Source of the DNA: Asterias rubens
Taxonomy: Eukaryota
DNA: 64,000 bases
Assembly: GCF_902459465.1 (NCBI RefSeq)
Contig: NC_047072.1
Span: forward strand, 15,004,001-15,068,000
Direction of reading: 5' to 3'
Shown here piece after piece: positions 613 through 63,812 of this stretch. Under the pieces are notes generated by a model that searched no databases, was not told the origin of the DNA, and saw only the letters and a list, made by a program, of their open reading frames with translations. A program made the position numbers and the translations under genes. Positions within the stretch are counted from its first letter, which is position 1, and every line of letters begins with the position of its first letter.

Positions 613-748
613 ATGAAGCTCACTTGTGAAGAAACTTTTGAGCAAGTGTTAAGCCGCAAGCCTGTTGGAGTACCAGCACGTTTGCTGTGTACCAGCCGTA
701 GTAGAGAAGAAGTAATATGCGACAGACGAGGCATCGAGTGGAGAAAAG
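613..748 (+). CDS. Candidate first coding exon of the dsf-like gene
   Basis: First ATG after the putative TSS; open for 45 codons + 1 nt (MKLTCEET...EWRK+G), ending at AAG|GTTCGC. Phase 1 joins exon 1046 to give G-DRLLDIP. The donor is weak and I recognise no homology. Confidence 0.3.
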
Positions 749-1045
749 GTTCGCATTTCAGAAACCATTAAAACACAGCATTATTTGGCAAGCGAATCTC
801 ATTTCAAGTTTTTTTTTTTCGCTTGGCCACTTTGGGTTCGAACTTGTCCTTATCCTCCATTAACACCATGGACAATGCAACTTCTTGTCATTATTCTTTC
901 CGCGCCTAAAATGGTCGTTATCTTCTTCTACATACGAGACAAACCAACGAACTTCATAGAACCTTCAATTTTTTTTAGAATATATGATGAAGTAGTTTGA
1001 TGTAATTTCTTTAAACAATGTATTTGATTGTTTTCTTCTTCCTAG

Positions 1046-4000
1046 GGGACCGTCTTCTGGACATCCCATGCAAGGTTTGTGGTGACCGTAGTTCGGGCAA
1101 GCACTACGGCGTGTATGCCTGTGACGGCTGCAGTGGGTTCTTCAAGCGCTCCATCCACAGGAATCGTGTGTACACGTGCAAACAACAGGGCAAAGGTGGG
1201 GGCTGCTGCCCTATTGACAAAACCCATCGCAACCAGTGCAGGGCGTGCCGCTTGCAGAAATGCTTTGATGCACACATGAACAAGGATGGTGAGTTTCTTT
1301 AACTATTTGTATTAGGATATTATTGGCTGATTCATTGTGACAAACCATTAATCTCGACAGAAAGTTGGCCTTTTTTTATTTTTTTATTAACTAACACACG
1401 CAAAATCAGTAGGCTAGTGAACCTGGTGCCTGCATTGGATATTGAAATCAAACAATATTGTACATAAAATGACATATAAAGTATTTCATATTGAAGATTT
1501 TGAAGAAAACTGAGTATCATTATCGGTAAAATACGCTGATTTTCCGACTTCAGCTTTACTGAAAATCGATAGGAGCTGTATTATTAAACTAAATTCTTGG
1601 CGGACAAATATTCAATTAACTTTGCAACCGTCTGACATGCGGGCCCTTCCCCGTCACCTTGGTCCAAGTCTCCATCTATATCTACCTCCGTAATCATGCA
1701 CATTATCATCCGCATCACTGAATTCGCACCATCACACATCGCGCTTAATATTAACATCGGCAAAAATAAATAGAAAGTTCCTGCACTGTTCACACTACTG
1801 ACAAGTCGATTATGCAGTTACGATCAGTCATAGTTTGTACCAATTAGTTTATGCTATAACAGTAAATGAGAACAGACCAAATTATATTTAAGTGATTACC
1901 CTATTTTGTTTAAGCAGTTAAACCAAGACTTATTTTCCCCATGGTTACTCGTGGTCCTTTCTTTAACGTTAAACCAGAATAGGAATGACCGTTTGGTAAT
2001 TTCATTTAATTAGTTCGCTTATCATTATAAAAATGCTTAGCACGAATCTCCAGTATTTGATGGTTATCAACTAATCCTTTGAACACATCACCGACGGATG
2101 GTGTAGCTACGACAATGGTACAGACAACTTTGGTTGGTTATACTATGAATCAACGTGAAAAGCCTATAATTACATACAAAAAGGTTCCGATAACTTGTTG
2201 TCTGTATAAAAATGCTTACGACCAAATACAAGTTTAGAAAATATCTGCTTATTGGCTCTTATTCAAGCACGGTCGGGGACTTACGAACACCGTACCTAGT
2301 CGACTCAGTAGGGCTTCCAATTTTTAATAAAAGTCGACTCTACGTTTTGCAGCAGGCGAGCGTGAGACGAAACGGTCAGAGTGGGGAGACCGCTGTTTCA
2401 CACCAAGGTGTGAACACAGAGTAGTCCTCAAAATTAGCTTTGGGCGGGAAGCACTGAATTTATGGACAAAAAAATAATATAAAATTTTGACTTCGGCTTT
2501 GAAGTATGAATGGCCTTGGCTGTATGGCGCGGAGCTTGCGGTTCAGAATAACAGAATAATCTGAAAAACTAAGGAAATGCTTTGATTTGTCTATGGTTGT
2601 GCGTGGAGTCGACTGATCGTACAGAGCGAGCGAGATGATATTACAAACTTTATTTTATATTCCGAAAACGCTTCAGCAGTATGTTATGAAAATAGTTAGA
2701 AAATGAATTTCAGAAAAAAAACCTATTTGGATTTTATTTTAGACAAAGGAATATCGAGCAAAATTAAACGAAGTAGGACTAGGCCTATTGTAAAATATTC
2801 ATCGAGATGCATAAAGGAAACCCAACAAAATGTTAATACTTCGCAAATTGGTTGAAATCATTGAATAAATAGGTAGGCCTTTGAGAAGCAAAAATCTCAT
2901 TTTAAGGTCAAATAATGATGTTCACCGACCTTTTTGAACCGTCCTTCTTTACTTTCGATCTCAATTTTGACATTGTTAAGACAATGTAATTTTTCACCAA
3001 AGTGTATACTGACATTGTTGCCCCCCAAATGTATAGACGCTTCCCACCCCTCCCATTGAAATTTTAAAATTTGAGATAATAATAACCAGAGTATAAAATG
3101 TTAAGTTTTATAAAGTTTTATGGAGCACTTGTGGCTAATAATAATAACTCAATGTTTTAAACTATTGTTCTATTCACACATATTTGTTGCACCTTTGCAG
3201 TAAACAGTTATTATTTTTCACCAACGTCTTCGGGGTACGGTAAAAATAACGTCTTCAAATGTATTATCTTATGTTCCGCGTGCCCCATTCTGCGTTGTAC
3301 AGTAGGCCAATAACAGGTAAAGTGTCACACTCTTAAGCTGTAAGAGCGGGAGCTTTGATCCTAATCTGCTTCATTTTGAGACATTTCTTTGTTCTACAGT
3401 ATACTACATAGTTTGTCAATACGTAAACATCGTTATTCAAATTGCTAGTTTCTTAGATCGCTTTGAGATGACTTCTGTACTAAGAAATGGTATTCTGAAG
3501 GTGCTTGTTCAATCTCAGCATAATCGGAAAAGACTGCTCAGATTGCTTTAAGACTATGTATGTGTAAAAATCCACGTGTGACCGGAGACGGAAATTTTTT
3601 CAAACCTTTCATTTAAAACGTGTGAAAATAATTTTGTCCTGAGGAACAGAAGGTTTCCTGAAGCTGCTGGTAAAATTCAAACCGCTCAGAGATTAATTCT
3701 GTACTCAGAAATTGGGACTTTTAAAGCTGCTGGTAAATCTCAGCGTGATGGGAGACTACATTGTTCAAACAGCTCGATCTGATATTGGTTCTGTATGAAC
3801 TTGGGTGTTCTGAAGCAAGGGCGGATCCAGGGGGGGGGGGGTACGATCCAAACAGACCAACCCGTCCCTTTTTTCCTCGTGTATACATGTATTTTGAAAT
3901 AATCTGATTTTGCACGTTAATAACATTTTAAGCCCAAATTCCAAAAGGCCCACATTCTACATCTCAAATTTTGAAGGCATTTTGTTTTGTTTCCTTCATC

Positions 4001-7000
4001 AATTTTATGCATCAAATGGCCCTATGCATCAATAGACTGACCACAGAGCATCTATAATCCGCCATTTTGAAAGCTACTCGCTAGGCGCTCTCACGCTCCA
4101 TCTTTCACAGATTCTGCCCCCCCCCCCCCCTTGGGTCAGGATCTGCCCGTGCCCAAGCTATAATTACCCCCTTTCCTTCCTTTTGTTTGAAGACAAGCCA
4201 TCTCTGGATCAGCCGTATAATATGGTTAACTACAATCTATGACCAAACAGTTTCCAAAAGGAGGGCAACAATGAAACAAACCCAAATGTATTCAAAAAAG
4301 ACATGTGCGACATGTTTAACAATGCTAACTATATTAATAAAAACCTGAATATTAGAATGCCCGCGGGAAATATTATGTTAGACAAAACATTATCTGCACC
4401 CCCTACCCACCCACCAAGCTGTTAGACAAAACATTATCTGCACCCCCACCCACCCATCAAGCTGAACTTCCTTGTGCAACGCTTTGTCGGATGCCGGACC
4501 AGACCGAAAACAAAAAATCATAAGCCCCCCCCCCCAACCCGAAAAACAAAATGTATCGCCTAAAATTGTTAATTTTTTGTAGCAGCTGTTGCTGTCAATG
4601 CAACAATCAATCACCACAACAATAACTATTCGATACACACTAATAATAGCGAATAACTACCAAAATAAATAATTCATTTATAGTTTTTTTAAAGTCAGAA
4701 CAGTGAGACCACATTGTGAACTTAATTTAATAATAAAGGACCCGGGAAAATACTGAGTATACAGTGCTAACACACATCGGTATCAAGGTCAATTCATTAC
4801 CCCCCCCCCCCCGATGCAAATCTAACATCTATTAAAAACTTATTTAAGTTATAGACTTTTGGCAAAGCAATCTGAGGGATGCTTTGAACTTCAAAGTCTC
4901 CACAAGGAACTCGTTCATAAATTTAAAGTCAATTCACATAATGGGATATATGAATATTAAATCCCTCTCACCCATATTGTTGTATATTATGAAAACCCTT
5001 TCTGATGCCCATGTGGGAACGGCTAGGCTGTGTCAATGATTGGCGTTCAAGTACGTCCTTTTCAAAACGTCACATTGTGCACGTGCAGCGGTTTAGGTTC
5101 TCATCAAGCACCACTCCAAAATTCAAAGCCAACTCAATGAGCATATTGGGGAGCAAGAATATATTTAACATCAATTGTTTTGTTATATATTTTATTTCTA
5201 GTTAAAAATAAGAGACGCGATGGTACAAACAACCTAGAGGCAGCTCCCAAACTTGTGGCGTCCGTGACTGATAAATTATTTATAATGAACACAAAGTAAT
5301 GGGGTCAATTTATACCACGCTTAGAAGAACAGTTTACTGTTATAAGTTGATCTTTGCTAACGGTGTACTGAGGTGGAATCATTCCAACTTTAATATCAGC
5401 CTTTTTTGTGTGGAATGCATTCCATTCTTTGTCTTTTAAACAAACTTCTAAATACTTCAAAATAATAAGAGCAATTTAAATACTTAAAAAAACCAAGCAG
5501 ACTCACTGCATGGCGTAAACTTTCAATACAAGTATATACCGTTAAATCTCCCCAAATCTCGCGACTACTTTGAGAGTTATAGTACACCTGCCCTTCTAGT
5601 ATACTGTACTTCCCGATGAGCGGATCGACACCGCGACAAAGTGGCTCGGACATGGCCAGTATTGCCGCTCATCAGGCGACGTCCACATTCCACATTAATT
5701 GCTGCATTGATTTTCTGGTAGTTAGTTCTTCTAGGGTTAGTCTTGGCACACTTACAGCAACCCTCCCAAAAAAGTGCAAAGCCTTTTTAGACTGTAGCGG
5801 TGACGACTATACTATACCTGGGGGTTGAAGATGCGACCTAACCCCTTGGATTGCTCTAGGGTGTACAGTGCTTACATCGCGTAAGACAGATGCTGATGTA
5901 GCACACACGTCCACACAACCGCTAAATAATTGCGCGTGTAATCTCCCTGCCCACCCACTTCATCTCCTGCACTCCTCCATCATGCACTGCGGTATTTTTC
6001 TTAAAAGCCAGACTGTTGAGACAGGCGGCAAACGATATTGTCCGCTTGAGTGCACTGTTACTGCTTGGTCACGCTTGGGTGGGCGGCTAGCCACCGTAAG
6101 TTGTGACTCCTGTCTCCCCTACACAACACGCACCACACCGACACACTCTTTTATACACTCAAAAGTTGTCTAAGTCTTTACTTAAAATTTGAGTTGAAAG
6201 TAATTAAACCACTGTTGTAATAACAAAAGGCAGACTGAGAGAACAAAACAACGAAGGCGTGGCACCCCGTTTGGTACATTTGCCCATCACAGCAGAGAAA
6301 TCTTGATCTTAAGGTTCAACGTCATTATGAATCTAATAATTGTTACCCGTCTCGTTTTCACTTGTATTATTATTTACAAACTAGCATAATAACTAACAAG
6401 AAGCTTGTAATGAAAAATAATCCAATAAGAAGGAATGAAAAAAGGACCTTTAAAGCGGGAAGAAATCATGCCTGAAAGCATGCGGCATGAAAATCGTTTC
6501 CATGACAGAGAGCTAATTTAATAATAAGTCAATAATGATGAAGTAATCCAATGATAGAAGTTTAATTTAGAGCGATACCCAAGGGACGATTTACACGAGC
6601 GACGGTACGATCAAGCTGCTGAAATGGATCACCGGTGCTGGCTGTCAAAATAACGGCGGGCAAGAGTGGCCCAGACACGGTCAAGAACAGAATACGGTAG
6701 CACGACTTCGAACCGCCGCGTCAATTACAAGACGATCTTTGTCATAACATGAGATTATTTATATGTCCTTGTTGACTATTGAGCGGTTTTTTGGTGGGAA
6801 TCAAAGCTCTATTTCGCAGGGACTATTATACCAGGCATCATGCTGTTTCCGATCCTATGATGTTAAACCATGCGTAGAGGATCGAGATCTAATGACAATT
6901 TATTGAGTTGGTAAATAACGATCTTGACTGCTTCAGAAAAATTACGCCACAAAATCTTCTCGTGAGGAGAGGTTCCTTACTTTTGGCGCCATTTATTATT

Positions 7001-10000
7001 GTGCAGGGAAACAGTAAAGACACATTTTTATGCCAACTTTTCTAACACCAATGACAACCCAATGATAACTTTGATAACAATACCAGTACAAATGAGTCAG
7101 TATATGCCAACTTTATCAATGATGATATTTTACTTAAGAACTGAACTATCCTCAGACAGAAACATACATTACACAAACACCAAGATTGTCAGAAGGTGTT
7201 AGATCGTGAACACACCTGCCCAGGTTGACGGCACGACATGTCTAGCGCAAAAAGGGCTAACCACACACGGGGCCCAGGCCCTTGGGGCCGCCTGCGCTGT
7301 CTTACCACCTCACGGTAAAGCTCACAGAATCAACACAAGCTTTCATTCTATATACGAAGAGTGTTCATCCCCTTATTAGTGTGGGATGGTTATTTTAGCC
7401 CCGAAGCTAACCGGTGTTCTGGGGTTATTTCGGGCATTTATCTTGGGGAAAGAAAATGATATAAGACGGCGCTAGTAAAGTACACATTTCACGCACAATT
7501 TAATTGATATGGACAGGTTCCTGTAATTCACTGACAAAAATGTCGAACAATGCCGGGGGCTCATTATTTGTGTGTCTAGATTTTGCAATGGAATAAAGTA
7601 GCACAAATATTGATTTTCAAATGGAATCATAATTGCAAAAAGATAACTCCAAAATGCAGCAAGGCTTATAGTCACGTGGTGTGTCGGTTTGTAGGATCTT
7701 CCGATTACGGATACATACAATCTAAAATGAATTTCAGCTTTTTCTTGAACTTGTCGGCAGAAATTGCACAAAAGAATGTTTCCAATACATATAATAACGA
7801 GAGAAACAGAGAAAGTGTGTGGAGGTGGGGGCATGGGGCATGACATTCGAGCTGGAAAGAGCAGAATAATTTACAAATTATAAAATAAAAAAAGTCATGG
7901 ACAAAGTCCTGTTACATCAATTCCTCTCATGGTTCATACTTGTTTGTTTCTGATATCATTCTTTGATGGGTGCCATGACAGGTGCTTCCATGGGTATGCA
8001 AAACAAAAATTGTCTGTAAATAAAATTCCCACAGTCAAAATTGTTCCCTAAACATTCCTGAGCCAGACTTAACAACAAGGACGAACAGATGAACAAACAC
8101 GTGACACGTGCTCGACATTGTGCTCGGTATTGTTCGGAACAAATCGGTGTATCATTGGCCAAACAGCTTTGATTGATTCTCAACAAAACCGACAAGCTGG
8201 GTTTGTGTCAGAATGTCTGGGCTTAACAAGAGACATTAAAATACATTGTTTGTTTAAATGTTTTCGTTGCACATTGCAAACACACAATGGTGAACATTTT
8301 AGCCACAACTTTGATTTTTAACGACGTTCTCATTTCAGCTAAGAAAACATCTTCATCACAACAACCACAAGTAACCAAGTTAAACTAATACAAACAATGG
8401 TTTCGGCTTCGATGAACAGATGCAAAACAATCAAATAGGGTTAACTAAAATTATCGCCTGTTATTTTTCAACAAATAGCCGAATCACTGACATAGTAATT
8501 GTCTCTTTTTTCAATTGAACATCAAGTATTTATTCATCATATTATTTTCTCCTTGTTCTTTTCCATTTTCCAGCTGTTCAACATGAGCGAGGACCCCGTA
8601 AACCAAAAGCCAAACCTTCGCCAGACGACGGCAGTACCGGGTCTGCAAGCCCCGACCCCCCGTCCGCCCATCACCCCGTTCATGCCACGCACCCGTCGTC
8701 ACACCGCCATCACGGCATGACAAACGGCACAAGTAGCACCCCCGTGGCGGTGGTCTCCTATGTGTCATCCTCTATGTTCTATGGGACATTCTACCACAGT
8801 CTCCTAACAGCTGAGCAGTACAATGTCAGTCCAATGGCTCTAGACCTGACTGCCAAAGTCAAGGCAGAGATGGAGGGTGGACCTCATGCAGGCTTCCACA
8901 CGGCCATGACAGGTACGACAATAATAACCCCGCCCCATCCCTCAAGTACAACACTTTTCATAAAGGCTGCTGGCAATTCAACATTTCACAAAATAATGCT
9001 TATCAAGTTTATTAAGGGTATTCATAGCGACGAAAGACAACATGCTTGAAAAACCCAACTTGACAATGACCTTTGCCTCTTTATAACCCACAGGTAGCCC
9101 GGAGAGTATGCCCGAAGTAGCGGCACGCCTTCTGTTCACATCCGTCAAGTGGTCCAAGAACATCCCGTGCTACCTACTCTTGCCATATCGTGATCAGGTA
9201 CATTAAATCTCACAGTTTCAAAATACAGGGCAAACTTGTAGAGCTCCAACAGAAAGTAGAATCATCCTCGCTCTTTCTTATTGGCCAGACAAAAATGTCA
9301 CCACAATAATAATTAATAACTGAACTGAACTTACAGTGTGTTAAACTTCGACCCCAATTGAGTGTTCATTGGATCTCAAACACGAACGCGTGGCTACCAA
9401 ACCAACTGACGCTCATGTCTAAACTGTCAACTTATGGTGGTTATAAATGACCAGGGAAACTAACAATAACTCAGAGGGGGGAAACTGAACAAGCTGGTTT
9501 CAACAAATGACTCGCTGTCTGCAATATCAAGACTAATTCACACGCGTAACACTTTTAGAAGTCATCCTAGTTTGCATTCCTCACAAGAGTAAATTGTTAT
9601 ATACTATATTCATAAGCACTTATTGTTCCCGCCATTTGGTTAATTATTATCACTCAAGTGGATGGGTGTGTACATGCAAACTGTTAAGAGTTTATAGGTA
9701 GTCGTGTAACGAAGTGTAACAGAGTCGAGACACAACTTAGCAGTGAAGTATGTGCCATCAACGTAAACCCCCTCACAAACTCAACAAACAGAAAACATAA
9801 AATCGTAAAAGCCTCGGAGAATTCGTTTGACTAATTTTCTCACTTGTCAACTTGGCCCATTTCTCTGCTTTCCCCTTCTCTTTGAACACTTTAATGACGG
9901 ACGCATTTAAAATAGTCCAGAAAGAACTACAAGTTTTGTACCACGACAAACATGTAGAAATAACACATCATTTCAAAAGCACATTACACACATTTTCAGA

Positions 10001-10784
10001 CTTTGTTGTTAAACTAACTGAAAAAGAAGCATGTACAACAGCTTAGTGATGTAAAACTCTAGATATGACATAAGTCCTATAACTAATTACATGTATCTAT
10101 CTTCACCAGGTGATCCTCCTTGAAGAAGGTTGGCGAGACCTCTTCCTCCTCGGAATTTGTCAATGGTCCGTTCCTCTAGAGATGGAGACACTTCTCAAGT
10201 ATCTTCCAAGAGAAGACAAGAAAATGTCCAGTGATGAACTTGCTAGGTTGACATCTCAGATTCGATACATGCAGGATGTAGTGGCCAGACTACGGGCTCT
10301 TGATGTGGACTTTACTGAGTTTGCTTGTCTTAAGGCAGTGGCACTTTTCAGACCAGGTCAGTCAGAATACACTCTTGCTGTGTCCATATAACCATCAGTA
10401 ATGACTTTACTGAAAAGCTCATACTGAAATTACTTTAACCTCACATTCAGAAGACAAAAGACATATCTCAAAGTACCCTAAATGACAATAAGTTTACTTC
10501 AAACCCAATAATTTTACTTCTCCATTTTATTTTGTTGAACAGAGACACATGGAATCAGAGAACCCCACCAGGTTGAGAGTCTACAAGACCAAGCCCAGGT
10601 TATGTTAAGCGACTACATCCGCCATTCCTATCCAGGTAGGAGTGTTCGTTTTGGTCGCCTCCTTCTTATCTTGCCCGCCCTCCGGAAAGTAAGCAGCAAG
10701 CTCATCGAGAGGCTGTTCTTCAAGGAGACAATTGGCAACATCCCAATTGAGCGTCTCCTCAGTGACATGTTTCAGAGTAGCTAG
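1046..10784 (+). CDS. dsf: NR2E nuclear receptor, dissatisfaction (dsf)-like; 5' exon unresolved
   Basis: Exons 1046-1288, 8574-8912, 9094-9197, 10110-10356, 10543-10784; all GT-AG with consistent phases. [48 protein letters not shown]...[13 protein letters not shown]...[27 protein letters not shown] and GPRKPK match Drosophila Dsf as I recall it, rather than Tll/TLX (RILD, RSIRRNR, GPRxST). The LBD is complete and ends [14 protein letters not shown]. Confidence 0.85.
4377..4463. repeat. Imperfect tandem duplication, 2 x ~44 bp
   Basis: gttagacaaaacattatctgcacccc... at 4377 and 4421, in the large intron of the dsf-like gene. Confidence 0.85.
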
Positions 10785-11164
10785 GTGGCAAACACTGACT
10801 GACACAATGTCAAAATGGTCAATTTGACTGACAGACGACCTCTTTGAATTCCTCAGCCAGTAAAGATTTACAGCCAAACACAGAGGGCGCTATACACAAT
10901 TATCAATACTCCAATCGAACAGACTGCTAGAACTGGCAAATAGGGTGCTTCTTTATGTTTCCTCACAGAGGGCATGTTAAAGTTTAAGATGTAATATCAC
11001 TATGAGACTGTGGTCTCTCATTACAGCAAAATCAACTCCACTGTCAGATACAGTACTGTAATACAAGAAGATCTTTGAAATAACAAAACACAATGTTTAT
11101 GTGCGAAGGTGATAAAAACACTTTGTTTAAATTTAGGGGGGAGTAATACTTGAAACTTCCCGAA

Positions 11165-11572
11165 CGCATATGAACATCTTATATTGTAAGGCACAAGAGG
11201 AAATGGGCAAAACTACGCATATGAACATCTTATATTGTAAGGCACAAGAGGAAATGGGCAAAACTACGCATATGAACATCTTATATTGTAAGGCACAAGA
11301 GGAAATGGGCAAAACTACGCATATGAACATCTTATATTGTAAGGCACAAGAGGAAATGGGCAAAACTACGCATATGAACATCTTATATTGTAAGGCACAA
11401 GAGGAAATGGGCAAAACTACGCATATGAACATCTTATATTGTAAGGCACAAGAGGAAATGGGCAAAACTACGCATATGAACATCTTATATTGTAAGGCAC
11501 AAGAGGAAATGGGCAAAACTACGCATATGAACATCTTATATTGTAAGGCACAAGAGGAAATGGGCAAAACTA
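11165..11572. repeat. Perfect minisatellite, 8 x 51 bp
   Basis: Unit cgcatatgaacatcttatattgtaaggcacaagaggaaatgggcaaaacta repeated 8 times with no visible variation. It explains the 17-aa repeat ORFs on both strands. Confidence 0.97.
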
Positions 11573-12910
11573 CTATTCCATGTTAAGATATGTGATCAAA
11601 TGATGTGCAGTAAATAAGAATATAAGGTAATTGAAAATCTCAATAAACATGCTTAAAAAAACAACAATTAATTGACCAACTTTCTTGAAGATGCAAAAAT
11701 TGCATCAGGGATCAAAGATAACTACTTGGGTTTAACCCAACCCTGATGAAATGATATTCCATAACATGTTCAGTACTACATTTCTTCTTTTATTTATTTA
11801 TTTATTTATTTATACAGTATCTTTACAGCGTAAATTATTTTGAGTTATTTATTCAATATTAAAACTGCACTTGCGGAAGTTTCTTCCAAGCTATTGACAA
11901 GTTTACTCATCATGCTTGTTTCCTGACCTCAACTACAACAAAAGTAACGCAAAGTTTTAAAGGCGCCAGTCTCTTTGAACTTGATGCCAGTTTTTCCTCA
12001 GAAAGGTTTGGGTAGAAGATAATCCTAAGAAACAAACAAAAACATAAGTTTTTTACAAAGTGCTAGTAGGTATAAGAAATCAAACAAATTAATTAGTTGG
12101 TAAGTTTTTATTCTTTTTAACATTACTTCAGACATTTTATTTTAACAGTGAAGGAGTATTCACAAATTTCGTCCAATTCTCTTGAAATGTAAGTCTCATA
12201 TTATCAAGAAAACATTTATCACAGATTCCTGTCCAGACAGACTTGACCAATGGTTCAAGTCTTTAATTTAGTGGTAGGGCAAGCATGAAAAAACTACTTG
12301 TTTGTTGTTAGTATTAGTTAGAACATCAACTATGATGTAGATGATGTATTATATTTTTACTGAAAACCAAGTGTAAATATGGTGCATGACTTTAGATGTA
12401 AATACTACTTCATGTGGATTATTTAATATGTGGATTATTTAATTTATGGAAATGGATCCTCAAGTTGTTAATTTATTGAGAGTAAATAAATGTCGATAAA
12501 ATAAAAACGTTTGAAAGAGAATTTTTGTTGCAGATCTTGCGTGTCTTCCTCTTAGATACAAAGTTGACTTGCTTCAAATCAAGACTGACTGATAAGCATT
12601 ACAGATATTAACTTGTCACACTCTAAGCTTTTTTAACTGTAGTCTTCTCCTGTTTTTTGAGCAGTTATTTCCTCTGAGATGTATTGTCTCATTAGATGAG
12701 ACTATTTCTGGCATCACTCATGAACTCTACTTGGATAAATATGAATATGATACATAAATTCCATAGCAATGCAATATCTGAAATCCTCTTAAAGCCTATA
12801 TGGAGTTCAAACCATTGACAGAAATAAGTAGGGAGCCAACTTGCAGAAATGCTCCAACATTAACTAGTTGTTCCATCATTAATGCTTGCTTTATTTGCTT
12901 AGTTTTTACC

Positions 12911-17925: not shown

Positions 17926-18074
17926 CTTGTCCAAATGACAAATTCTGCCTTGGCCCATGTGAAGTAAAAGTAATTCTGATTGGCTTAGAAAAAAAGCTCC
18001 GCCCAGAAAATTGCTTGATTGACCAATCAGTGGCTTTCACCGTAAGAGCTTCAGCATCCGGGAACCCGGGCAAA
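17926..18074. promoter_or_regulatory. Bidirectional promoter TRMT2B/MEAF6
   Basis: Divergent ATGs only 150 bp apart (17925 and 18075). ATTGG 17979-17983, GC box CTCCGCCC 17997-18004, CCAAT 18023-18027. A YY1-type CAAGATGGCGGC overlaps the TRMT2B start on the minus strand. Confidence 0.8.
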
Positions 18075-21583
<3,509 letters not shown>

Positions 21584-45361: not shown

Positions 45362-45489
45362 AGCCCGTGAGTTTAAACTAAGCTATCATCGCACATTGTC
45401 CGCAATGATCTACAGAAGAGCCCAGAGCCCGTGAGTTTAAACTAAGCTATCATCGCACATTGTCCGCAATGATCTACAGAAGAGCCCAG
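45362..45489. repeat. Perfect tandem duplication, 2 x 64 bp
   Basis: agcccgtgagtttaaactaagctatcatcgcacattgtccgcaatgatctacagaagagcccag at 45362 and 45426. Confidence 0.95.
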
Positions 45490-48243
45490 CTCTCTCTTTC
45501 TCTATCTCTCTCTGTTTCGAGAAGTTTTGTGCACAACTTTTTAAAGGCAGTTATACCTCGTCTCTAGTTTTCACTATACAACATTACATGCACACAGCAT
45601 TTACTACAAGTTTGCTATTAGTTTAATCCACTCTGGACGCCAAGACGAGGAAAACTGTCATATAAAAGTTAAAACCTCTTTCTTTCTGAAAACTCACGTC
45701 GTTGTCTTGTTCATATCCACCTGCAACTAGCTGTTATAAGCTTAATTTTAGAAATGCGTGATTTGTAGATGGATGAGAAGATGTGCTAACTGTAAATAAA
45801 ATAGTACAACCAAACGGTAAATTTACACGTGTTTAGAGAAAGGCAACATGCCAGTTGTGGCCCCTCCCCAGACCTTCACTACACGGCCCCGATCTACTAA
45901 TACCTTTATGTAAATCCGACCGTTGTAACCGAATTAGAATCAATCATGGAACACATCAGTAATCTTCTCTTTAAAAGAAAATCAGAAGAGCTACCCTCCC
46001 ATACACTAAATCATAGACCAGACAAACAAACCCAGCTCAGAAGAGACAAACCGACTGTCAAAGTGGTGTAACAAGGGTTAACCATCATCACCAGAACACA
46101 TAGATCAAGCACATTGCAAACAAGCCAAGTGTGCCCTATCGAGGCACAGCTTCACACCAATACCATGCCTAGGGGTGTTCAGCCAGAGACAATAGGGGAG
46201 TTTTACCAGGTGTTTGCCACCATTGTAAGGAGGTGACTTCACGGGTTGTCGAAACAAAATGATAGCTGCTTTGAAGTCATGGAAAGGTTCATCACCCAGA
46301 GTATACAATACCTTGCAATCTACTATCTACATGGCAAGACTTCGTGGAAAAAAATAAAACACACACAGACCAAATTGTTCACACAGTGCTAGCTAACGGT
46401 TATGTTACAAATGTTGAATGAGGTGAGACTCTGTAAGAGCTGTTTGGAGGTGGGCCATCATCAGCAGATTCATAGTCATAGTAGGCTCTTTATCCCATCT
46501 TCCTGACACCAAACCATTCCAAACTAGTAAATCAAGATTTACAATACAACACAGTAATGTGTGACACACTCTATGCACTGATGAAGTGACAGTTTACATT
46601 GAAACATCCCTTGAGTCCTACCATTACAGCAAACCTATGGTGAGACGGACACCTAAAGCCACAATCAACACTCACTAGCTCCAGGCAAAGCAATTTCACA
46701 TGACACACCAAATTTACCATTCCCCTGTTGATCGCCCTTCATTCCCTAAGCAAAATGCACTCACTTTTGTTGTCTTGTTTTTCTACGTGACGGGCCAATT
46801 GACTTTCAGTCACAGCGTTTTGGACTCTTAAAGTTAAAGTGTTAATAAAATAAATAAAATGTTGCGTTTATAATTCTCTTGACACCTCATTCGTTTATTT
46901 CTTGTTTTTCAAGATGATGTGGGTTGATTGAACAATGAATCAAACAAACAAACTGACAACCCTAAAATACTGCAGTTCTCATGACATTTATGCAAAAATA
47001 TTATTCATCTTCTAATGTAAACTTTCTTAGGTTTCCTCCAAATAAAAATGTGAAGATTGGCTCAAACCTCAATAGTCTTTGGTACGACCAGTGGAAAGTT
47101 CCCAATATTGTCACTTGGAAGCAGGAATCTGCTTACTACAATTTTTTACGCTTACGGACCTCTGTAATTACATGATTCTATGGACCATAAAGCAAATAAT
47201 TCCACGGTAAGCAGAGCCATTAAAATAAGCATACTAGGTTATTTCTTAATGAACCCAAAGCTTACTGTGTATTGTGATGTGTTATGAGAAGTTGTATTTG
47301 ACGCATCATTCTGTTATCATTACAAAATCAAATTGCTTCATTGGCTTTTCTTAATATCATGATTATGTTTTAATTGAATTCATAATGATAGCAGGAGGAG
47401 GAGCACGAACGATTATTAGTTAACGTCATTTTTATTTATTGGCATTCAGCGAGGGTTTCCGATCGGAAGGGTGCCGTCATATTGAGCAAATTACCCGCCA
47501 CCTCAGTGGACTCGCTCGCTTCATTCTCTCGGTCAAGACACCGTACTCAGTTATTGTAATCGCATGACAAAGGAGTGAATTTCACTGTATAACAGTATCA
47601 TTTTTAGCAAGAAATTGCTCTGTTGTTACATCGGTCGCGTCTATTTGTCTGATGGGGTTACGACCCACACGCCTGGGGACGCTCCATGGGGGTAATACGG
47701 GCAGCAATACGGGCATCGTATGCCGGGCCGGAGGATTGGACTGACTACCAACCATCCGGTCAGAATCATGATCCTGTCCTGCTCATTGCATTCAACCAAT
47801 GTTTCTATAATATCAACATACACGGCACCGCCATTGTCCAATCATCATCCAGAGATTTCGTTTTTTGGGGGGACTGAGCCGCAATAACAAAAGCCACCCA
47901 AATAGAATTATCCGCCATTGTATTGTCATGCTAATCCAAATAGGGGGTAGGATTCGTCCTTAACTTGGCCCCTCAGTAGCCCACGTGACTGACAGGGTGG
48001 CCCTGTCGAATTGCCCTGTGTTATGAATAAGTAAAAGGCGACCCCAATAACTTGATGGATTTGAGTGGAGTTCAGGACCACTAGACACCCGTAGTTCTTG
48101 AAAACTTTGGGCATAACAACCACAAGTATCCCTGCTGGATCATCTTTGATTTTAGACGCTTGCATAACTGTGTTGATTGTATAATGGCAGTTTGTACGGA
48201 TCGTTCAACGCAAATTATAAGCACATCTCACCCTGGTCGGACC

Positions 48244-51200
48244 ATGGAAATGGTAAATGCTGCTCAACGGGCAATGAACGCCAAAGTCACATCTACATCA
48301 AGTAAGTGTCACATTACTATTTGAAAAAAAAAATCTTATCAGCTTTGAAAATTATGACTCTGTATTTCAATTTCAACGAATTTACTTTAGATCTATAACA
48401 AAAGTAAAAGTAAAATTAAAAGTTGTTAGAAACAATACAGCAGAATATAAAATAAGAACTCGGTAAAATACACTAAAAGTTTTTAGAATCATGGATATTG
48501 TTATATTCAATTCAAGTTTATAGTAGTTATTTCTCTTAGAATTTTAAACAAACCTTTAAAAAGTAAAGAATATGATGTGGTAAACTATGCCCCACACAGA
48601 ATAATATTACGTGTAACACGGTAGCGAGCTTTGCGTAATACCGGTAGTACCTACACAGTGCGTAAGACCGGTAGCACAGATACATTGCGTAAGACCGGTA
48701 GTTACCCATGCAGGGGGAACTACTGTGCGTCACACCAGTAGCTGGTTTTGCACCTGCTGAACTACAGCGGTCCACTAGCTGCGACTCCGAGCATGCTCTG
48801 AGTCACCAGGGTTTAAGATTTATGATATGTGCTTACAATATTACTTCTAATATAGCCCCATTTCAGCCAGCCTATTTACAAACAATATATACAACAACAT
48901 TTAAAGTATTGCCTTTTCAATAAGAAAGCATCCACAAAGTTTTAAAAGATAAAAACAAGTAGCCTACCCAATAGTTCTGATCATTGATCTCCAGCAATCG
49001 GGTATTCAGCTTCTATACAGTTGTAAATCAGCCATGTGCATGAAACCCTAAACACTGCAAATAATGTTTCGCGTGAAATAATTTGCTTATGTTTATCCGA
49101 GTCTAAGCAACATATGCATTTTTAATTGTAGTCGTGAGTAAGAACAACAGTTTGGCGGGAAGAAGAGTAGATTTGAATCTACTAAAAAATAATTTAATGT
49201 GATGGGAATGTTATCAAACTCAAATCATTTGAAAAGTATGTATGTCTATTTTTTCATAAAAACAGTCGACCCGCGTATTGCTCCATTTACTTCATGAAAT
49301 TTCATTTGAAGAGCTAGAAGGCAAGTATAAATAAATGTATCAGCTTTTTAGGCGACGAATAACATGCTATTTTTAATTTAAATATCGGCAAAGAGTCTCT
49401 TAAAAATGTGTATAAATGTTTCCATTTTCTGTCGACATGCTTGAAACCTTGCCTCCCCCTCCCTAGAAACATAAATCATCCACCGTCTTCTACCCCTCCC
49501 ATCTCCCATTTCTAGAAACATAAATCCTCCACCGTTTTAAAAAGAAAGAATCCCCTCCCTCGGGGAAGGCTACACCACTTTATTATCCTCTAAGAAAAGC
49601 AGAAGAAGAAACATTTCTTTGGTAAAGAGTTAATTCCCAGCGTTTACAATCCTTCAAAGGGTGACGTGTTGGTCATTAGTCAACGCATTAGCCATTACGG
49701 TCCGACTCAATCGGAATGCTATACTTCTGTTGTGACTTAAATGACCACTCTTAAATAGGATCTGACATCTGTTGCTGCAGGCACGTACATCTATAGATAC
49801 TCTTCATCAAATCAGGGTTGGTCACATTCGAAATTTGGCAGCTCGGAAGAATGTAAAAAATAAGGGAACATCGACACAATTCTGTTTTGGTGATGAAAAT
49901 AAACACCAAAACCATTTCTCTACTTGTTTCAATTGGGTAATGCAGCCTTAGTTTGAACAAAACATCATTGCGGTTTTTAGGAGAATAAGTTTTTTTTTAT
50001 CGCTTGCTTGAGGACGAGAATAATAAACTACTCCAGAAGATTCCAGCCCAGGAGTTGTAGATTCCAATTCAGAAGCTAAGCTGTCAGTCATTCCAAATCA
50101 AATGGCTCAATGAAGTGGTTTTCTTTAATTGTTAAACCAACTCATTGTTAGACTCTTGTATAGACGTTTTGATGTGCGAAATCTTGAGAGCAACAATTAA
50201 AAACTGAAAAGGGCAATCTTGAGATTTCAAGGAGACTTTTAAAATCTGGGCACCACGGAAATTAGACGTCAGTGGAAAAAACCGCAAGTCATAATGAATT
50301 TTGTTGGTCTGCAAAGATGTCAAATTATGTATCAATTAAAACAATCGATTCAAAATTCTGGTAGAATCAAATCTCGTTTTTAAGCTCGCAAACTCTTTTT
50401 ATAAATAGTTTTGCAGAAAGTTTGTAATAGATTGCTGCAGCAATATTTTGAGTTACATGCAGAAAGTAATCAAGATGACACAACTGTTCTGGCTTGCTTT
50501 ATAAGTAGTTTCATGAATCAATATAATTAATGTTTTCAAATAACTTTACAAACCTTTAGTCAAACATTTGTCAGGACATCAATCGAGCAAAACATGTGGA
50601 ATACAAACTTTTATACCATCAGTTTCAGTCTGCAAGAAACCTCTCTCAGATATTAAAGATTTGTATTCTTTTCAACTGAAAATCACCAAGTCATATAATC
50701 TGTATTAAAAATTAACTTGTACTTTGCATCTATTCATGACGGATTAAAGGGATAATCTGGTTGAATTTGAGATCTTAGTGATGAATTCAAAAGATCTCCA
50801 TGGATACAAACTTCTAGAGTTGAGAAATAGTGTGTGTCCCGTAGAGCATAATGGAGCGACTTTATATCCCCACAACATGCCGTCCATCAAAGAGACAACA
50901 CGCAACCCCAAGAAAAGAGTCTCAACAAAAATCGGATTTCATACTCAGACGCTAAACCCGTCATTAATAACTTCGAAGATGAAGTCAACGCCTGAAAAAT
51001 AATAGGAATACAACTTGTAAGAATGCCTGGTATTACTGCCACACTGACTTGCTGAAATCCCTAAGTGTTCCGGGAACAATGCAGGGGCTTTTGGACCACG
51101 CTGGGCAAGGCAAAAGGCGCTCAAATCCGGGCGAATGATTCGGCCCTCAACACGGCTTTTGTGGGAGTTTCGACTAAACTGGGCACACGTTATTTATGAA

Positions 51201-54200
51201 AGCTTTTTAACGGTAAATCGCCTTTACTCTGTGCATGTACAGTCGAAATCTTTCCTCTTTATCGTTAATCTTAAGTCTAATCCAGTCCTTTTTTTCCTTC
51301 GTCTGTTTCTTGTCGAGTGTTTAACTCTCTGCCAAACTCAGATTGCTAATTATGTTCTAATCTTAAGACCCAAGGTTAATTTAGACAGCAAGTAGAACGA
51401 AGGGTTATATTTAGAACTGTTATATTACATGCAGCGTAGACGAGCGTTTTAATAAAATAGAAAACCAAACTGACTGTTTTTTGCTAATAATATTAAGCGC
51501 ATACGTGATACAATTTAAAAACATTAATTCGTGATGATTGCACAAAGGATTACCAAGACATCAAACCAATAGAAAATAAAATTAAGACAAATTACAAACA
51601 CAATTTATTAATTTTGTAAAACTTATCACATGAAAACAGTATTTTCTGATTTGTTATTAAAGTATTCACGTAAAGTGAAATGCATTTGAATTTCGGGAAG
51701 TATATAAACCCCTTAATTACATTCAATACTGGCGACTCATCTGACATTCATGTACAACATGTTCACATAATTATTATTTATTTATGCATGTTTTTATCTG
51801 CATGACAGGACGACATTAACGCAAATGAGTTTTCTTATTATAACATGAGCTCCTCTCCTATTCAGAGTGAATTGTGCTTTTATTTTCGAGGCCGGTTCTA
51901 AAAGATATTTTGCAAGTTAGTTTAAAAACACAAAGATTGCTTTGAGTAAGAAAACTCAAAAGTCACTAAAGTCAAGTGCCAACATAAAAAAGGGGAAAAT
52001 CAATTGCATCGACGGAATGTTTTACCATTGAACGCGAGCGATTTTTAGGTGTCAGTATATATAGTTGTTGTTTTTATACGTTCCATCATAAAAAACAATA
52101 GCTCAATATGTCGATAAAAAATATCGATGTGAAAGAGTTTATGATAACGATACTGTGATGTACGTGTAGTCTCTATAACACATAATATTGTACACAACTA
52201 TATATCTCGTCAGTATCCTATATACAGAGTTTGGTCCATAACATTTTGTAAAAGATTCTTACATGCCTATAAATCATATTCATGAATCAATTATAAATTT
52301 TTTCAAAGTGTAAATCCAAATTTAATTTGTTTGTCTAACTAAAAACCGCAGAACAAATATTATGCTTGGTTATCGGAGTTGGTGCAGAATGAAAGGGAAA
52401 AGACAAATCTAGTCCCAAACAGGTGTGCTGCCCTTTCCCCATTCATTAACAACTCTAAAGATAAATCGCGTCTAAGTATTAGGATTGTTAGTCCAGTCAG
52501 TCTTGTTACTTTCTTAAGATAGGTCTTTGAGATCCCAACTTTGCATGCCAGCAATGGTCAATCTATTAACTCATCTTAATGAGGGATGATCTTTTGTGGT
52601 CAACTCGAACAGCAATTGAGTTGAGGACCTCCCCTAAAAAGACAGATGAAAGAAGGTCAGATGGACCTCTCCAAAGTTATGAGCACTCTTTACTCCCTAG
52701 CAGAGTTACATCAAAATACCCTTACCGAACCCTTCAACCAAGGTACCCATTCCAAGATCTTATTTCGTCCATGGCTTTCATGAGCTCTGCAGAGCAAAAT
52801 CTTTCACCAATGTGTTTATCGACATTTGTTGAAAAACTCAAAACAAAAAGCATACGTCAGAAGAAAATACAATGTTTTGGCCTTAAACAACAGATTCTGA
52901 AATCTTTGCCAGTTTATTCTGAGTGACAATACTGTCAAAATATCGAACTTCTGAAATGGTGTCAACTTTATACAAAAGAGCGGGTGATAATCATTGACGG
53001 GCCCGATGGCTCAAGGCCCGACCACTCGACTGATCTCAGGCTTGCTGTGATGCGCAAGGTTAGCGGTCCTAGAGTAGAATGAGTGCGGGTGGAGGGTACT
53101 TGTAGAGAGAGTTTTGATAGGGCAATGATGAGGGGCCAATTAGGCTGACCACCGGGGGCGGGGGCTCATGTTCATAAAATGATAACATATAAATTGTTGG
53201 GTTTTTTTTTTTTGGGGGGGGGGGGTGGTGAGAGTTCCACGTTTTGTAATATCTCATGGTTTTGATGATTACTTACAGATGAAACTGAGTGGTCACAAAA
53301 TGTTCTATAACCAAAAACATTTCATCAAATATTTTTATGATTTGTTTCCCTCACGAATAGATAAAGTATTTATAACCTATAAATAATCACACAACCTTGC
53401 GCTTAAAAACAATGGACTTGATCAAACAAATACCAAAACAATTTCATTTTCTCTTTATCGCAATTCTGTTATATATTTTTGAAACTCTTTTTATTTTAAT
53501 GATGCAACGTCACTTATGTTTGCGTCCAAGAAAGCTGATAATCGAATGGAGTTTTAATGTAACAATTCCAGGAGAAGTCAGTTTATATGAAAACACGCGT
53601 CTTGTGTCTATTATATTTTTGTGTGTGATTGGCTAATTTCTAAATGTTAATATTATTTTTCCCAGGTCGTATACTGGACATCCCATGCAAGGTGTGTGGT
53701 GACCGTAGTTCGGGCAAGCACTACGGCGTGTATGCCTGTGACGGCTGCAGTGGGTTCTTCAAGCGAAGTATTCGGCGCAATCGTACCTATGCATGTAAGA
53801 ACCGTAGCGGTGGACCATGCCCCATCGACAAGACCCATCGGAACCAGTGCAGGGCGTGTCGACTCAAAAAATGTATCCAAGTGGATATGAATAAAGATGG
53901 TAAGTTTCATATTAAGGTTTCACAATTTAATTTACCGGTATAAAACAATGTACTTGCTTGACAACTTGTTTGAAATGTTAGAGAGCGATGAGGGGACCTA
54001 GGGAATGATAATGCAAAAACAGCCGGTTACGATGTAAAAAAGAGTGTTATACATTTTAACAAAAAACTTCACCTTTATCAATATTAAAAGCACACTGTTT
54101 CTGATATGGTAACACCTGCGAGTTATAGTAAACATTCCGAAGCTGAACTGTGTTTTATTCATCTTCATTGCTATTGCTGTTTAGTGGAACACTAACCCAC

Positions 54201-57200
54201 TGAAAGTTTAACTATTAAAGAACTGGGTTAAGTATACTACTGAAGATAACATGTTCAGAAGTATTCCCTTTGCACCTAATTGTATCATGGGGTAAAAATC
54301 AACACAATGTTGTCATCTTTCCGATTTTCTTCGTCGAAAAGGGACCACAAATCTACCCGTCTTTTGTGTAGTACTCCCCGGGCTCGGTGAAAAGGAAGAC
54401 GGGCGCATGAGAAGCACATGCCAGCTGCATAAACAGGGACTGACTGGGACAATGCTCCCTAAAGGCACCCTTTATAGAGACCTGGTCCTTAACCAAAGAC
54501 TGGCATACCTCAACAACTGAATTAAGCTGGTTTCATTTTCGTATATTAATTTTCATATAGGAAAGGAGATTTATTTCATCGTGTATTATTTTGGCATGGT
54601 GTTTACACGTAATGTTGAAATAACTTTTCAACCTGCCTAAGGCGTACTGCCTCTTCTTGAAGTCAATATTATTTTAAGGTCAACATGACTTCATAAAAAC
54701 TTCTTTTTTTTGTGGTGACAAAACGTGTCAATACATAAATGCCATGACAACTTATAACAATATTATTTAAAATTGTCTTATCAGCCGTTCAACATGAGAG
54801 AGGGCCCCGAAACTCAACTATAAGGAAACAAATGGCATTATATCTGAAGGAGTCAGCAGCAGCCGTCAACGATGTCTCAGGGCCGTTGGTAACTGCTTAT
54901 TCTCCCCATGCACAGACCGTGATTAGTCCGCTAGGTGGGGTAGAGGCTTACGGAACACTCCTTGTCAGCACTCCAGAGTATGCCCTGCCAGCCGGGCCGT
55001 TCCCGTGTTACCCAACACCAAAGGTAAGCTTACGAGTTTAAATGTCAATGTCAGCCATCCATCATAACAAAAATGGGACCTCAGTCTATCGTATTAATCA
55101 TGTTCAGCAGCGGAAACTAAGACAAAAATTAAGACCAGCGCGTAACACCTTTATGCTGCGCATGATGACAGTGGTTCAAAGTGCAAACTTATACTCTTTT
55201 AGTCAAATAATAAAGTTTCTTGTCAATTCCTGAAAATTTCGTCAAAATGATTAAAACATCTGTTTATACTTTTCTTTTAATTTTCAGCACTATCCCCGAG
55301 ACTACATCCGACCAATTCATACGAGTGTGGAGACGGTATGTGAGACGGCAGCCAGACTCTTATTTATGAGCGTCAAGTGGGCCAAGAATGTACCTGCATT
55401 TGTATCACTACCTCTCAGAGATCAGGTAAGACAACACTGTGTGATTTCCTTTACATTACTTCACGTCAGGATTTTATTTTTACTTAAAGAAGGAATATTA
55501 CAGAATTGGTTTTGCTAACACAACAGTTGCTGGCAGTGTAAGCACTTTATGTAATCAACCATATACATAAGCCGACAAATCTGTGGAAGTTCGGATCGAT
55601 CGGTCATCTGCGTCACGAGAAAATAGGGAAAACCCGATAACACATTTTGCATGACATCGATTAAAAATGAATAAAACGCTCACTGAACGAAAAACGTCAA
55701 ACGGGAAATTAGGCCGTGTCCGAAACGACGACTTCGGCTACAGCTATGGCTAGATCGCGCGCTTCTGCTATTCTTCAACACTGGTAGACGCGCTGATCTA
55801 GCCGTAGCTGTAGCCGAAGTCGTCGTTTCGGACACGGCCTAAGTTTTTTTTTTTATTTCTCACCAAATATGACATTTCAGACAGAAATATTTCACGGGAT
55901 GTTTTCTCTATCCGACCGTGTAAGTTTTATGTAAATCTGTGATCTTCACGATTTTTTTCTTACCAATCCTGAAATGTTCCTCTAAACAAACTTCGCAACC
56001 ATTCATGCTCGTCAATGGTATTTTGCACATGGACAGAATGAGAGATAACCAAATGACGTCAGTAGTTCTTATGTACATGCTGATTACCTTTTACAAGAAA
56101 GTTAATGGATATCAATACATGTATACACAAACTAATTACCTATCAGTAATGAGATCGTTGATTTGTGGACTTTTGCACACGTGGCCTTGTAGATAATGAC
56201 ACGTGTTGTGTAATTAATACCACCGTGAGAATCTACACTGACACTAATATAAACCAGAGTGAATATCCATCAATCAACACACGTCAGTACATTTCAAATC
56301 ATGATAATTACATGTAGATCATTCATCGCTATAATTACACGTACTTAAGTTTTAATTGATGGCTGAAAGCGTTTGAGATGGCTATAGGTGAACGGTCATA
56401 AATCTTTGACGAATAATGGTCCATGGTTTATCCCCTTTTTTTTGGGGGGGGGGTGATTATTGAATACATTACGGTCTTGGGTATTGTGGTTAAGTCATGT
56501 TATTGTGTTGATTTCAGTTGCTGTTATTAGAGGAAGGATGGAGGGAACTCTTCATACTTGGTGCAGCACAGTGGCATATGACAATGGACGCTACGGCTCT
56601 CATGAATGCAACAGGTATAGCCTAATATCATTTTTACATTCAGTTTGCCAAACTCAACATTTTAGATTTTAATGATTTAAACAAATGAGAATAATAAGGA
56701 AACACACTATTTTGAAAACTCAAAATTAGACGAACTACACAGTACAAGAGAAGACTAATGACAACATTTCTGTCTTGAAAACAAGTTAAGACTTCCACAT
56801 AACCGTATATCAGAAACATGAGGGGGTTTTTCCGTCACTGATAATAACATGGAACAACATTTAATTTTAGGAATGCAACCAGAAAACACACCGGCAGAAA
56901 AGTTTGCAGCAATCTCCAGCGAGCTAAGAGTTCTTGAAGAAATCATTGTAAAGCTGAGACAGTTAGAGGTAGACGCTACTGAATATGCATGCCTGAAGGG
57001 AATTGTCGTCTTCAAGACAGGTGAGTTGCTTGGAGTGCTGTATCATCTTATTGAACAAAAACCTATATAAGGCACATTTGAAACAGAGACAAACACATTG
57101 GTGAATATTTCATCTGGAAACGACACTTAAATTCCACTTAACTATTCTTTACACACAGACGTCTCCGGTGTCCATGAGACCTCCTCTGTTGCTAGTCTCC

Positions 57201-57406
57201 AAGACCAGTCGCAACTGACCCTCAGCAAATACATTACACTCCGACATCCGACACAACCTTTCCGCTTTGGGAAGCTTTTGCTGCTGCTACCTACACTAAG
57301 AGCCGTCAGACCCAGCACTCTCGAGACCTTATTCTTCCGCCAGACCATTGGTTCAATGCCTATGAGTAGACTGTTGTGCGACTTGTATAAAGCCCACGAA
57401 TTCTGA
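48244..57406 (+). CDS. NR2E1: Tailless/TLX nuclear receptor (NR2E1 orthologue), ~387 aa
   Basis: Exons 48244-48301 ([19 protein letters not shown]+A|gtaagt), 53666-53899, 54785-55023, 55288-55425, 56518-56614, 56871-57020, 57159-57406; phases consistent. [44 protein letters not shown]...[20 protein letters not shown] and [19 protein letters not shown] match vertebrate NR2E1. Confidence 0.95.
48632..48701. repeat. Three copies of TGCGTAA(G/T)ACCGGTAG at a 27-bp period in TLX intron 1
   Basis: Cores at 48632, 48659 and 48686 with variable linkers. Confidence 0.8.
55484..55985. mobile_element. Older TTAA-type (Kolobok-like) element hosting a nested MITE
   Basis: Left end ttaaagaaggaatattacagaattggt; right end accaatcctgaaatgttcctctaa (degenerate TIRs). 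Located in TLX intron 4. Confidence 0.6.
55712..55839. mobile_element. 128-bp hairpin MITE with ~45-bp near-perfect TIRs and TA flanks
   Basis: ggccgtgtccgaaacgacgacttcggctacagctatggctagatc ... gatctagccgtagctgtagccgaagtcgtcgtttcggacacggcc; one mismatch; TA on both sides. Confidence 0.9.
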
Positions 57407-63724: not shown

Positions 63725-63812
63725 CAGGAAGCTTAAATAACATACATCAGTACAGCACCAGTGTCCCTCAGGAAGCTTAAATAACATACATCAGTACAGC
63801 ACCAGTGTCCCT
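63725..63812. repeat. Perfect tandem duplication, 2 x 44 bp
   Basis: caggaagcttaaataacatacatcagtacagcaccagtgtccct at 63725 and 63769. Confidence 0.92.

Follow-up and report, generated by a model that had tools for sequence, protein, structure and literature searches.

This report concerns a stretch of 64,000 nucleotides (nt) from the sea star Asterias rubens (NC_047072.1:15,004,001-15,068,000, forward strand), referred to throughout as the window and supplying the positions given below. It carries two nuclear-receptor genes, gene A, assigned to dissatisfaction (dsf, NR2E4), and gene B, assigned to tailless/TLX (NR2E1) and called TLX-B. The genes share a tract of 92 nt, encoding the first zinc finger of their DNA-binding domains (DBDs), that is almost identical within the Asterias genome, and an earlier note on this DNA proposed ectopic gene conversion confined to that finger. 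We have compared the tract and the remaining coding sequence (CDS) between paralogues and between species, and have weighed the proposal against its rivals.

The two receptor genes and their shared tract

The genes and the tract occupy the following positions.

613..10784, plus strand: coding span of gene A (tblastn with P0245/P0361)
613-750, 1046-1288, 8574-8917, 9090-9200, about 10100-10355, and 10542-10781 plus stop, plus strand: approximate exons of gene A
1046..1288, plus strand: DBD exon of gene A, the dsf/NR2E4 orthologue (AG acceptor 1044-1045, GT donor 1289-1290; matches XP_033635187.1, P0361)
1057..1148, plus strand: homogenised tract in the dsf-like gene (finger 1 with the P-box, Leu to Lys plus the CG of Arg), 91/92 against 53674-53765
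48184..57406, plus strand: coding span of gene B (tblastn with P0248/P0363)
48184-48306, 53666-53899, about 54784-55023, 55285-55428, about 56527-56619, about 56870-57028, and about 57180-57403 plus stop, plus strand: approximate exons of gene B
53666..53899, plus strand: DBD exon of gene B, the TLX/NR2E1 orthologue (AG acceptor 53664-53665, GT donor 53900-53901; matches XP_033636064.1, P0363)
53674..53765, plus strand: homogenised tract in the TLX (TLX-B) gene, 91/92 against 1057-1148

Both genes were recovered by tblastn with full-length relatives as complete models that contain a DBD together with a ligand-binding domain (LBD), and their exons fit the A. rubens proteins XP_033635187.1 and XP_033636064.1 essentially perfectly. 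A maximum likelihood (ML) tree of 39 proteins, with cnidarian NR2E as the outgroup, places gene A with arthropod dissatisfaction and its lophotrochozoan and ambulacrarian orthologues, and gene B with tailless and vertebrate NR2E1 (support 100/99 in each case). The intact gene A model has a C4 zinc-finger DBD, an LBD and a signature in common with protostome dsf; gene B has RSIRRNRTY and a further signature, both in common with vertebrate NR2E1. By these sequence criteria, gene A qualifies as a genuine dsf (NR2E4), and TLX (NR2E1) is the correct assignment for gene B. Because dsf and TLX form separate clades in the protein tree, the paralogues are older than the protostome/deuterostome split, in agreement with the earlier note, which had placed their divergence before the bilaterian radiation. 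The tree also refutes the idea that the dsf-like gene is a recent duplicate of TLX. The two tracts lie 52.6 kb apart on the same strand, with at least two unrelated genes between dsf and TLX-B as judged by synteny with the A. amurensis annotation only.

Window positions 1057-1148 and 53674-53765 are identical at 91 of 92 nt. The sole mismatch, GTT in dsf and GTG in TLX-B, is synonymous at a Val, so that 29 of the 30 codons from Leu to Lys are identical and one carries a synonymous change. These figures had been given in the earlier note and were reproduced by alignment, as was its statement that shared residues elsewhere mostly use different codons: in the remaining CDS 44/122 conserved-residue codons are identical between the Asterias paralogues, 13/32 in the same DBD exon and 31/90 in the hinge and LBD (Fisher test of 29/30 against 44/122, p = 4e-10). 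Synonymous divergence by region, which the earlier note had proposed to compute as windowed dS, differs accordingly, the proportion of synonymous differences (pS, Nei-Gojobori, NG86) being 0.054 in the tract and 0.89-1.0, that is saturated, outside it. A repeat search found the tract to be the only long direct repeat joining the two loci (families D9 and D12), and attempted alignment of the introns flanking the two tracts found no similarity between the loci.

Identity starts directly after a Leu/Ile difference between the paralogues. At the 3' end in Asterias it stops at the CG of Arg31, and the first protein difference, His/Arg35, lies four codons further on; across the five codons past Arg31, 9/15 positions differ. 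The earlier statement that identity ends where the proteins begin to differ needs a small correction at this 3' edge. In Asterias the homogenised tract has a minimum length of 64 nt and a maximum of about 92 nt. It is somewhat longer and patchy in the sea star Patiria, where synonymous identity goes on in patches to Lys45 on the 3' side with the paralogue residues His/Arg, Val/Thr and Thr/Ala retained. Just past His/Arg35 there is a further short feature:

1162..1167, plus strand: possible second micro-patch, Asn36-Arg37, with species-pattern sites

These codons read AAT CGT in both Asterias genes and AAC CGC in both Patiria genes, and may represent a second, very short conversion micro-patch.

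The tract across echinoderms and the case for gene conversion

For comparison, both genes were taken from an independent assembly of Patiria miniata, in which dsf (L007) and TLX-B (L008) occupy the same scaffold and strand with their tracts 88.8 kb apart. Other tract sequences were those of A. amurensis dsf (L009), A. rubens TLX-C (L010), and S. purpuratus dsf (L011) and TLX (L012). Single-exon contigs from metagenome and Logan data added a dsf (L001) and a TLX (L002) from one ENA sample with brittle-star-like peptides, an urchin dsf (L006) and a holothurian-like TLX (L003). TLX-C is a third, TLX-like sea-star gene located outside the window and found only in asteroids among the sequences compared (P0268 in A. 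rubens, P0265 in Acanthaster, P0366 in Patiria). The protein tree nests it among the echinoderm TLX genes, where the remaining eleutherozoan TLX genes form its sister group. In A. rubens it shares a chromosome with the window pair, at a great distance from it (LR699102.1:1554818-1578512), in Patiria it is on a separate scaffold, and its finger-1 tract shows no homogenisation with the dsf/TLX-B pair. In S. purpuratus, dsf (16.30 Mb, plus strand) and TLX (41.13 Mb, minus strand) are on one chromosome (AAGJ06000021.1). TLX with an identical tract recurs there on a 1.18-Mb extra scaffold (L013, AAGJ06000852.1), which is probably a haplotig, and the dsf-like proteins P0259 and P0269 have identical DBDs and may be isoforms or duplicates. 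Identities over the tract were as follows.

Asterias dsf and TLX-B, paralogues: 91/92
Patiria dsf and TLX-B, paralogues: 89/92
Asterias and Patiria, same gene or crosswise: 81-83/92
A. rubens TLX-C and the dsf/TLX-B pair of the window: 81-82/92 (10-11 sites differ)
S. purpuratus dsf and TLX, 24.8 Mb apart on opposite strands: 74/92
brittle-star-like dsf and TLX (probable ophiuroid, one sample): 77/92
remaining cross-species comparisons: 65-80/92

The A. amurensis dsf tract, from another independent assembly, scores 91/92 and shares GTT with A. rubens dsf. Among dsf and TLX-B of Asterias and Patiria, variable tract sites group the four sequences by species at 8 positions and by gene or crosswise at none, against 17 by species, 168 by gene and 13 crosswise in the remaining CDS (Fisher test, p = 2.6e-8). 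When only variable codons with a residue common to all four genes were counted, as a guard against compositional convergence (Patiria is richer in GC at third codon positions, GC3), 7/10 followed the species pattern in the tract and 7/103 outside it (p = 9e-6). Tract pS is 0.054 (Asterias) and 0.164 (Patiria) between paralogues and 0.54 between orthologues; outside the tract it is saturated at 0.66-1.0, and at 0.74-0.94 for orthologues of Asterias and Patiria, which are deeply diverged. In an ML tree of the tract, each species' paralogues pair with one another (support 71/93 and 65/85), with no branch reaching 95% bootstrap support, and the approximately unbiased (AU) test on the tract rejects a clade of dsf sequences (p = 0.0175) and one of TLX-B sequences (p = 0.0015). 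The flanks keep the signal of orthology, the rest of the CDS giving clean dsf and TLX clades. Clustering by species in the tract only, which the earlier note had named as the expectation under conversion, is therefore what Asterias and Patiria display. Over four data points, homogenisation is present at distances of 52.6 and 88.8 kb and absent at 24.8 Mb in inverted orientation and for the distant TLX-C. The earlier note had proposed to test whether the signal disappears in species where the genes are unlinked, and in S. purpuratus, where they are far apart, it is absent.

We conclude that recurrent interlocus (ectopic, non-allelic) gene conversion between the tandem, same-strand dsf/NR2E4 and TLX/NR2E1 genes of sea stars very probably produced the tract. 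Synonymous tract sites change freely across echinoderms, yet the tandem pair in each sea star carries the same states, which points to conversion and not to ultraconservation. The confinement to finger 1 proposed earlier finds support in the paralogue identities of 91/92 and 89/92 against 81-83/92 between species, in the 8:0 site pattern and in the AU test. Since the paralogues differ at 1 and 3 sites, and not at about 10 as the orthologues do, at least one conversion took place in each lineage after the Asterias/Patiria split (rough Poisson estimates of P(<=1 given 10) ~5e-4 and P(<=3 given 10) ~0.01), and the differing 3' limits of the tract in Asterias and Patiria fit independent events. 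The last Asterias event was recent, with 1 difference and a pS of 0.054 as compared to 0.029 between A. rubens and A. amurensis. The earlier note had spoken of ongoing conversion. Its recurrence is supported; "ongoing" goes further, as the last event to cover the GTT/GTG site probably preceded the rubens/amurensis split because A. amurensis dsf also has GTT. GC3 is 0.70-0.83 in the tract vs 0.48-0.74 elsewhere, a rise that is significant in only one of the four genes and is compatible with GC-biased conversion.

Three of the rival explanations concern how within-species identity might arise or persist without repeated exchange. If the reads of one paralogue had overwritten the other in the A. 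rubens assembly through collapse or polishing, the tract would be an artefact; short, near-identical paralogue tracts are a known failure of short-read polishing, and the Asterias TLX-B tract comes from one assembly only. However, the independent P. miniata assembly has the same pattern with its own codons, that of A. amurensis reproduces the dsf tract, the window tracts still differ at one site within unique, non-alignable flanks, and reads of exons that are 75-80% identical would not cross-map, all of which makes an artefact scarcely credible. Just as little weight is left to parallel shifts in codon usage or composition, through which paralogues would have converged independently in a GC3-rich Patiria and a GC3-poor Asterias. 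Five of the eight species-pattern sites are indeed T in Asterias and C in Patiria, and overall GC3 is 0.67-0.74 in Patiria vs 0.48-0.54 in Asterias. Outside the tract, though, fully conserved codons show no excess of the species pattern (species, gene and crosswise patterns are about equally rare, at 7, 10 and 5 of 119), composition cannot yield codon identities of 97% and 90%, and A. rubens TLX-C has "Patiria-like" C-ending codons within an Asterias genome. A single conversion in the sea-star ancestor, or slow divergence there, with within-species similarity retained and no later exchange, would suit the fair similarity of all sea-star copies (80-85/92) and the slower evolution of the tract relative to the remaining CDS. 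We nevertheless judge it very improbable, as it expects about 10 paralogue differences where 1 and 3 are observed, the eight species-pattern sites form an internal branch between the Asterias pair and the Patiria pair, and gene-wise clades are rejected by the AU test.

Several points weigh against recurrent conversion. All sampled sea-star copies, including the unconverted TLX-C, agree at every one of the tract's final 26 nt (Asp-Gly-Cys-Ser-Gly-Phe-Phe-Lys-Arg), and codon identity between Asterias and Patiria orthologues is 20-21/30 (67-70%) in the tract vs about 45% elsewhere (p = 0.03). A GENECONV-style run-length permutation on variable codons, which has little power with about 10 of them in the tract, gave p = 0.022 for Asterias and 0.20 for Patiria; more weight is given to site patterns, codon identity and the AU tests. 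Conversion is inferred from its footprint, with no observed event, shared polymorphism or heteroduplex; the TLX-B side in Asterias has the single assembly noted above; and two sea-star lineages were sampled, the ophiuroid pair being of metagenome origin. The invariant block lies as follows.

1123-1148 and 53740-53765: invariant 26-nt block, DGCSGFFKR, also in L007, L008, L009 and L010 (three paralogues, up to three species)

As no sea-star copy varies within these 26 nt, conversion can be diagnosed only from the first 66 nt, where identity is 65/66 (Asterias) and 63/66 (Patiria) within species and 55-59/66 otherwise. Conversion within a genome cannot make species alike, so the block needs another cause, whether constraint on synonymous sites, a preference for particular codons at critical residues or slow mutation. 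The sea-star-invariant 26-mer was also sought in a metagenome scan, where nothing was found. An ultraconserved element was rejected as a candidate for the whole tract, identity for either gene across echinoderm species being 65-83/92 and the invariance being limited to the last 26 nt and to sea stars. The earlier note had offered as its alternative a shared nucleotide-level element, such as an exonic splicing enhancer, an RNA structure, a microRNA site or an exonic enhancer, that fixes synonymous sites. The invariance of the block in five or six sea-star sequences, TLX-C included, and the raised orthologue identity in the tract both speak for such an element, which may contribute to the last 26 nt. 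As the main cause it is rejected by the variation between species: synonymous sites of the first 66 nt are free across species, both paralogues bear the same species-specific states, and TLX-C of the same genome differs at 10-11 sites. An Rfam search of the window gave no match and RNA folding showed no excess of structure (z -0.46 to +1.14), and we hold a shared element most unlikely to account for the homogenisation.

Recurrent conversion could be sustained by constraint on the protein. A stretch of 34 residues, LDIPC...KRSI, does not vary among the ambulacrarian dsf and TLX proteins compared. Strong purifying selection on these shared residues would pin first and second codon positions and hold the DNA of the island at least 75-80% identical, which may be enough for loci separated by 53-89 kb to pair ectopically, with strand invasion, in the course of repair or meiotic recombination. 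Each conversion would then reset the synonymous sites and renew homology for the next event. Leu/Ile just 5' and His/Arg35 just 3' of the tract are paralogue-distinguishing residues throughout Bilateria, and conversions that reach either of them would be purged by selection, which would set the tract edges.

The direction of transfer cannot be inferred because both copies are homogenised and the tract holds no paralogue-specific residue. The earlier note had taken the motif GVYACDG in dsf as a hint of transfer from TLX. Every ambulacrarian dsf compared carries GVYACDG, urchin and hemichordate included, which makes the motif uninformative on recent direction; protostome dsf has GIYSCDG and cnidarian NR2E has GIYACDG. 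Speculatively, the shared Val could go back to a conversion of great age, or the Ile/Val change may have happened in parallel. A bolder proposal, which we think rather unlikely, is that selection on finger 1 has preserved an island open to conversion for the more than half a billion years since dsf and TLX arose by duplication, with repeated exchange wherever tandem linkage survives and with the change from Ile to Val in GVYACDG, a state common to ambulacrarian dsf and deuterostome TLX, as an old footprint at the protein level. If true, two distinct developmental regulators would evolve their DNA recognition in a coupled way, through conversion.

Other features of the window and of related sequences

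The window is colinear with A. amurensis chromosome CP134965.1 (94-97% in alignment). By synteny, window positions 12900-21150 hold a tRNA(U5)-methyltransferase-like gene on the minus strand and, on the plus strand, a gene with a NuA4 domain; Pfam gave no match for ten open reading frame (ORF) fragments at 12.8-21 kb, so that the intervening genes are placed by synteny. Exact or near-exact copies of the exon ORFs of the window were not found in the protein collection, where the best matches were 88% and 93%. A perfect 51-bp minisatellite of about 12 copies, the central ones 100% identical, occupies 11062-11673. It lies about 300 bp past the dsf stop codon, probably in the 3' untranslated region or just beyond, and the A. 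amurensis alignment breaks at it (11216-11521). Degenerate tandem repeats with periods of 172, 90 and 82 nt lie at 62362-63117, and short perfect or near-perfect tandem duplications at 45358-45485 and 63725-63812 (64 nt x2 and 44 nt x2). An interspersed repeat, which resembles a short interspersed element (SINE) or a miniature inverted-repeat transposable element (MITE), is present in several copies:

24479-24872, 30586-30826, 58160-58485, 59042-59435, 59913-60304 and 60966-61335: SINE/MITE-like repeat of about 380 nt, copies 65-90% alike

Its copies are clustered downstream of TLX-B, and it recurs many times both within TLX-C introns (L010) and in the DNA upstream of dsf in A. amurensis. A further dsf-like DBD exon was encountered in metagenome ERZ23486757 and in GCA_013332895.1 (JAAUXW010026942.1) (L004/L005). 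It encodes GVFACDG and a distinct inter-finger loop, KNQQASEEGTCP, and its tract is the most divergent of those sampled (65-70/92).

Meaning and relation to known systems

Theory holds that duplicates escape conversion once they have diverged (Walsh 1987, as cited in PMC3199776). The sea-star pair suggests that a short, protein-constrained stretch can stay a conversion substrate in paralogues that predate Bilateria and lie more than 50 kb apart with genes between them. The genes are in tandem in sea stars and dispersed in urchins, which offers a natural experiment on the homology and proximity that germ-line ectopic conversion needs, and on how selection at paralogue-specific residues sets tract edges. 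For phylogenetics, DBD-only alignments of NR2E can give false species-specific clades, and the orthology of echinoderm nuclear receptors should not rest on finger 1. Full-text literature searches turned up nothing on conversion between dsf and tailless/TLX or on how NR2E genes are linked in echinoderms.

Comparable systems are known. In linked Dlx duplicates of Capitella teleta, gene conversion is limited to the homeobox (PMC3199776), and hexapod engrailed/invected, as cited there, undergo concerted evolution. Both resemble the sea-star pair in that linked developmental transcription-factor paralogues are homogenised only in their most conserved part, that of the DNA-binding domain, while the rest has diverged, and in that the signal is seen when the genes are closely linked and is absent otherwise. 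They differ in being lineage-specific, much younger duplicates that are closer together and mostly inverted, whereas the sea-star paralogues arose before protostomes and deuterostomes separated, run in the same direction at a distance of 53-89 kb with unrelated genes between, and share a tract of less than 100 nt that is wholly exonic. Long-lasting interlocus conversion under purifying selection is reported for duplicated histones of yeast (PMC4700949) and mammalian Hsp70 (PMC5865164), and mammalian pairs with conversion over more than 100 million years are attributed to Carson and Scherer (2009) in PMC3199776. These cases share with the sea-star pair the species-wise clustering of paralogues against orthology and the combination of conversion with strong purifying selection, and they differ in that homogenisation takes in the whole gene or a large part of it and the proteins are functionally equivalent. 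The sea-star genes encode functionally distinct receptors that share one finger and keep the paralogue-specific residues flanking it.

The edges of the tract recall the tandem ATP1A1 duplicates of frogs, in which conversion is reported to be opposed by selection at paralogue-specific sites (bioRxiv 10.1101/2020.08.04.234435). There too the genes appear as mosaics whose tract edges fall at diagnostic residues kept by selection, although that duplication is reported as recent with most of the gene converted, while the sea-star pair is mostly unconverted with one island. Ultraconserved coding elements resemble the tract in near-perfect nucleotide identity that includes synonymous sites, but theirs is an identity between species, whereas the sea-star tract is identical within a genome and 65-83/92 between species. 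The process, gene conversion, is a known one and the case is new. It is unusual in the pre-Bilateria age of the paralogues, in the small and purely exonic island, in the distance with genes between, in the recurrence in two sea-star orders and in having an urchin as negative control.

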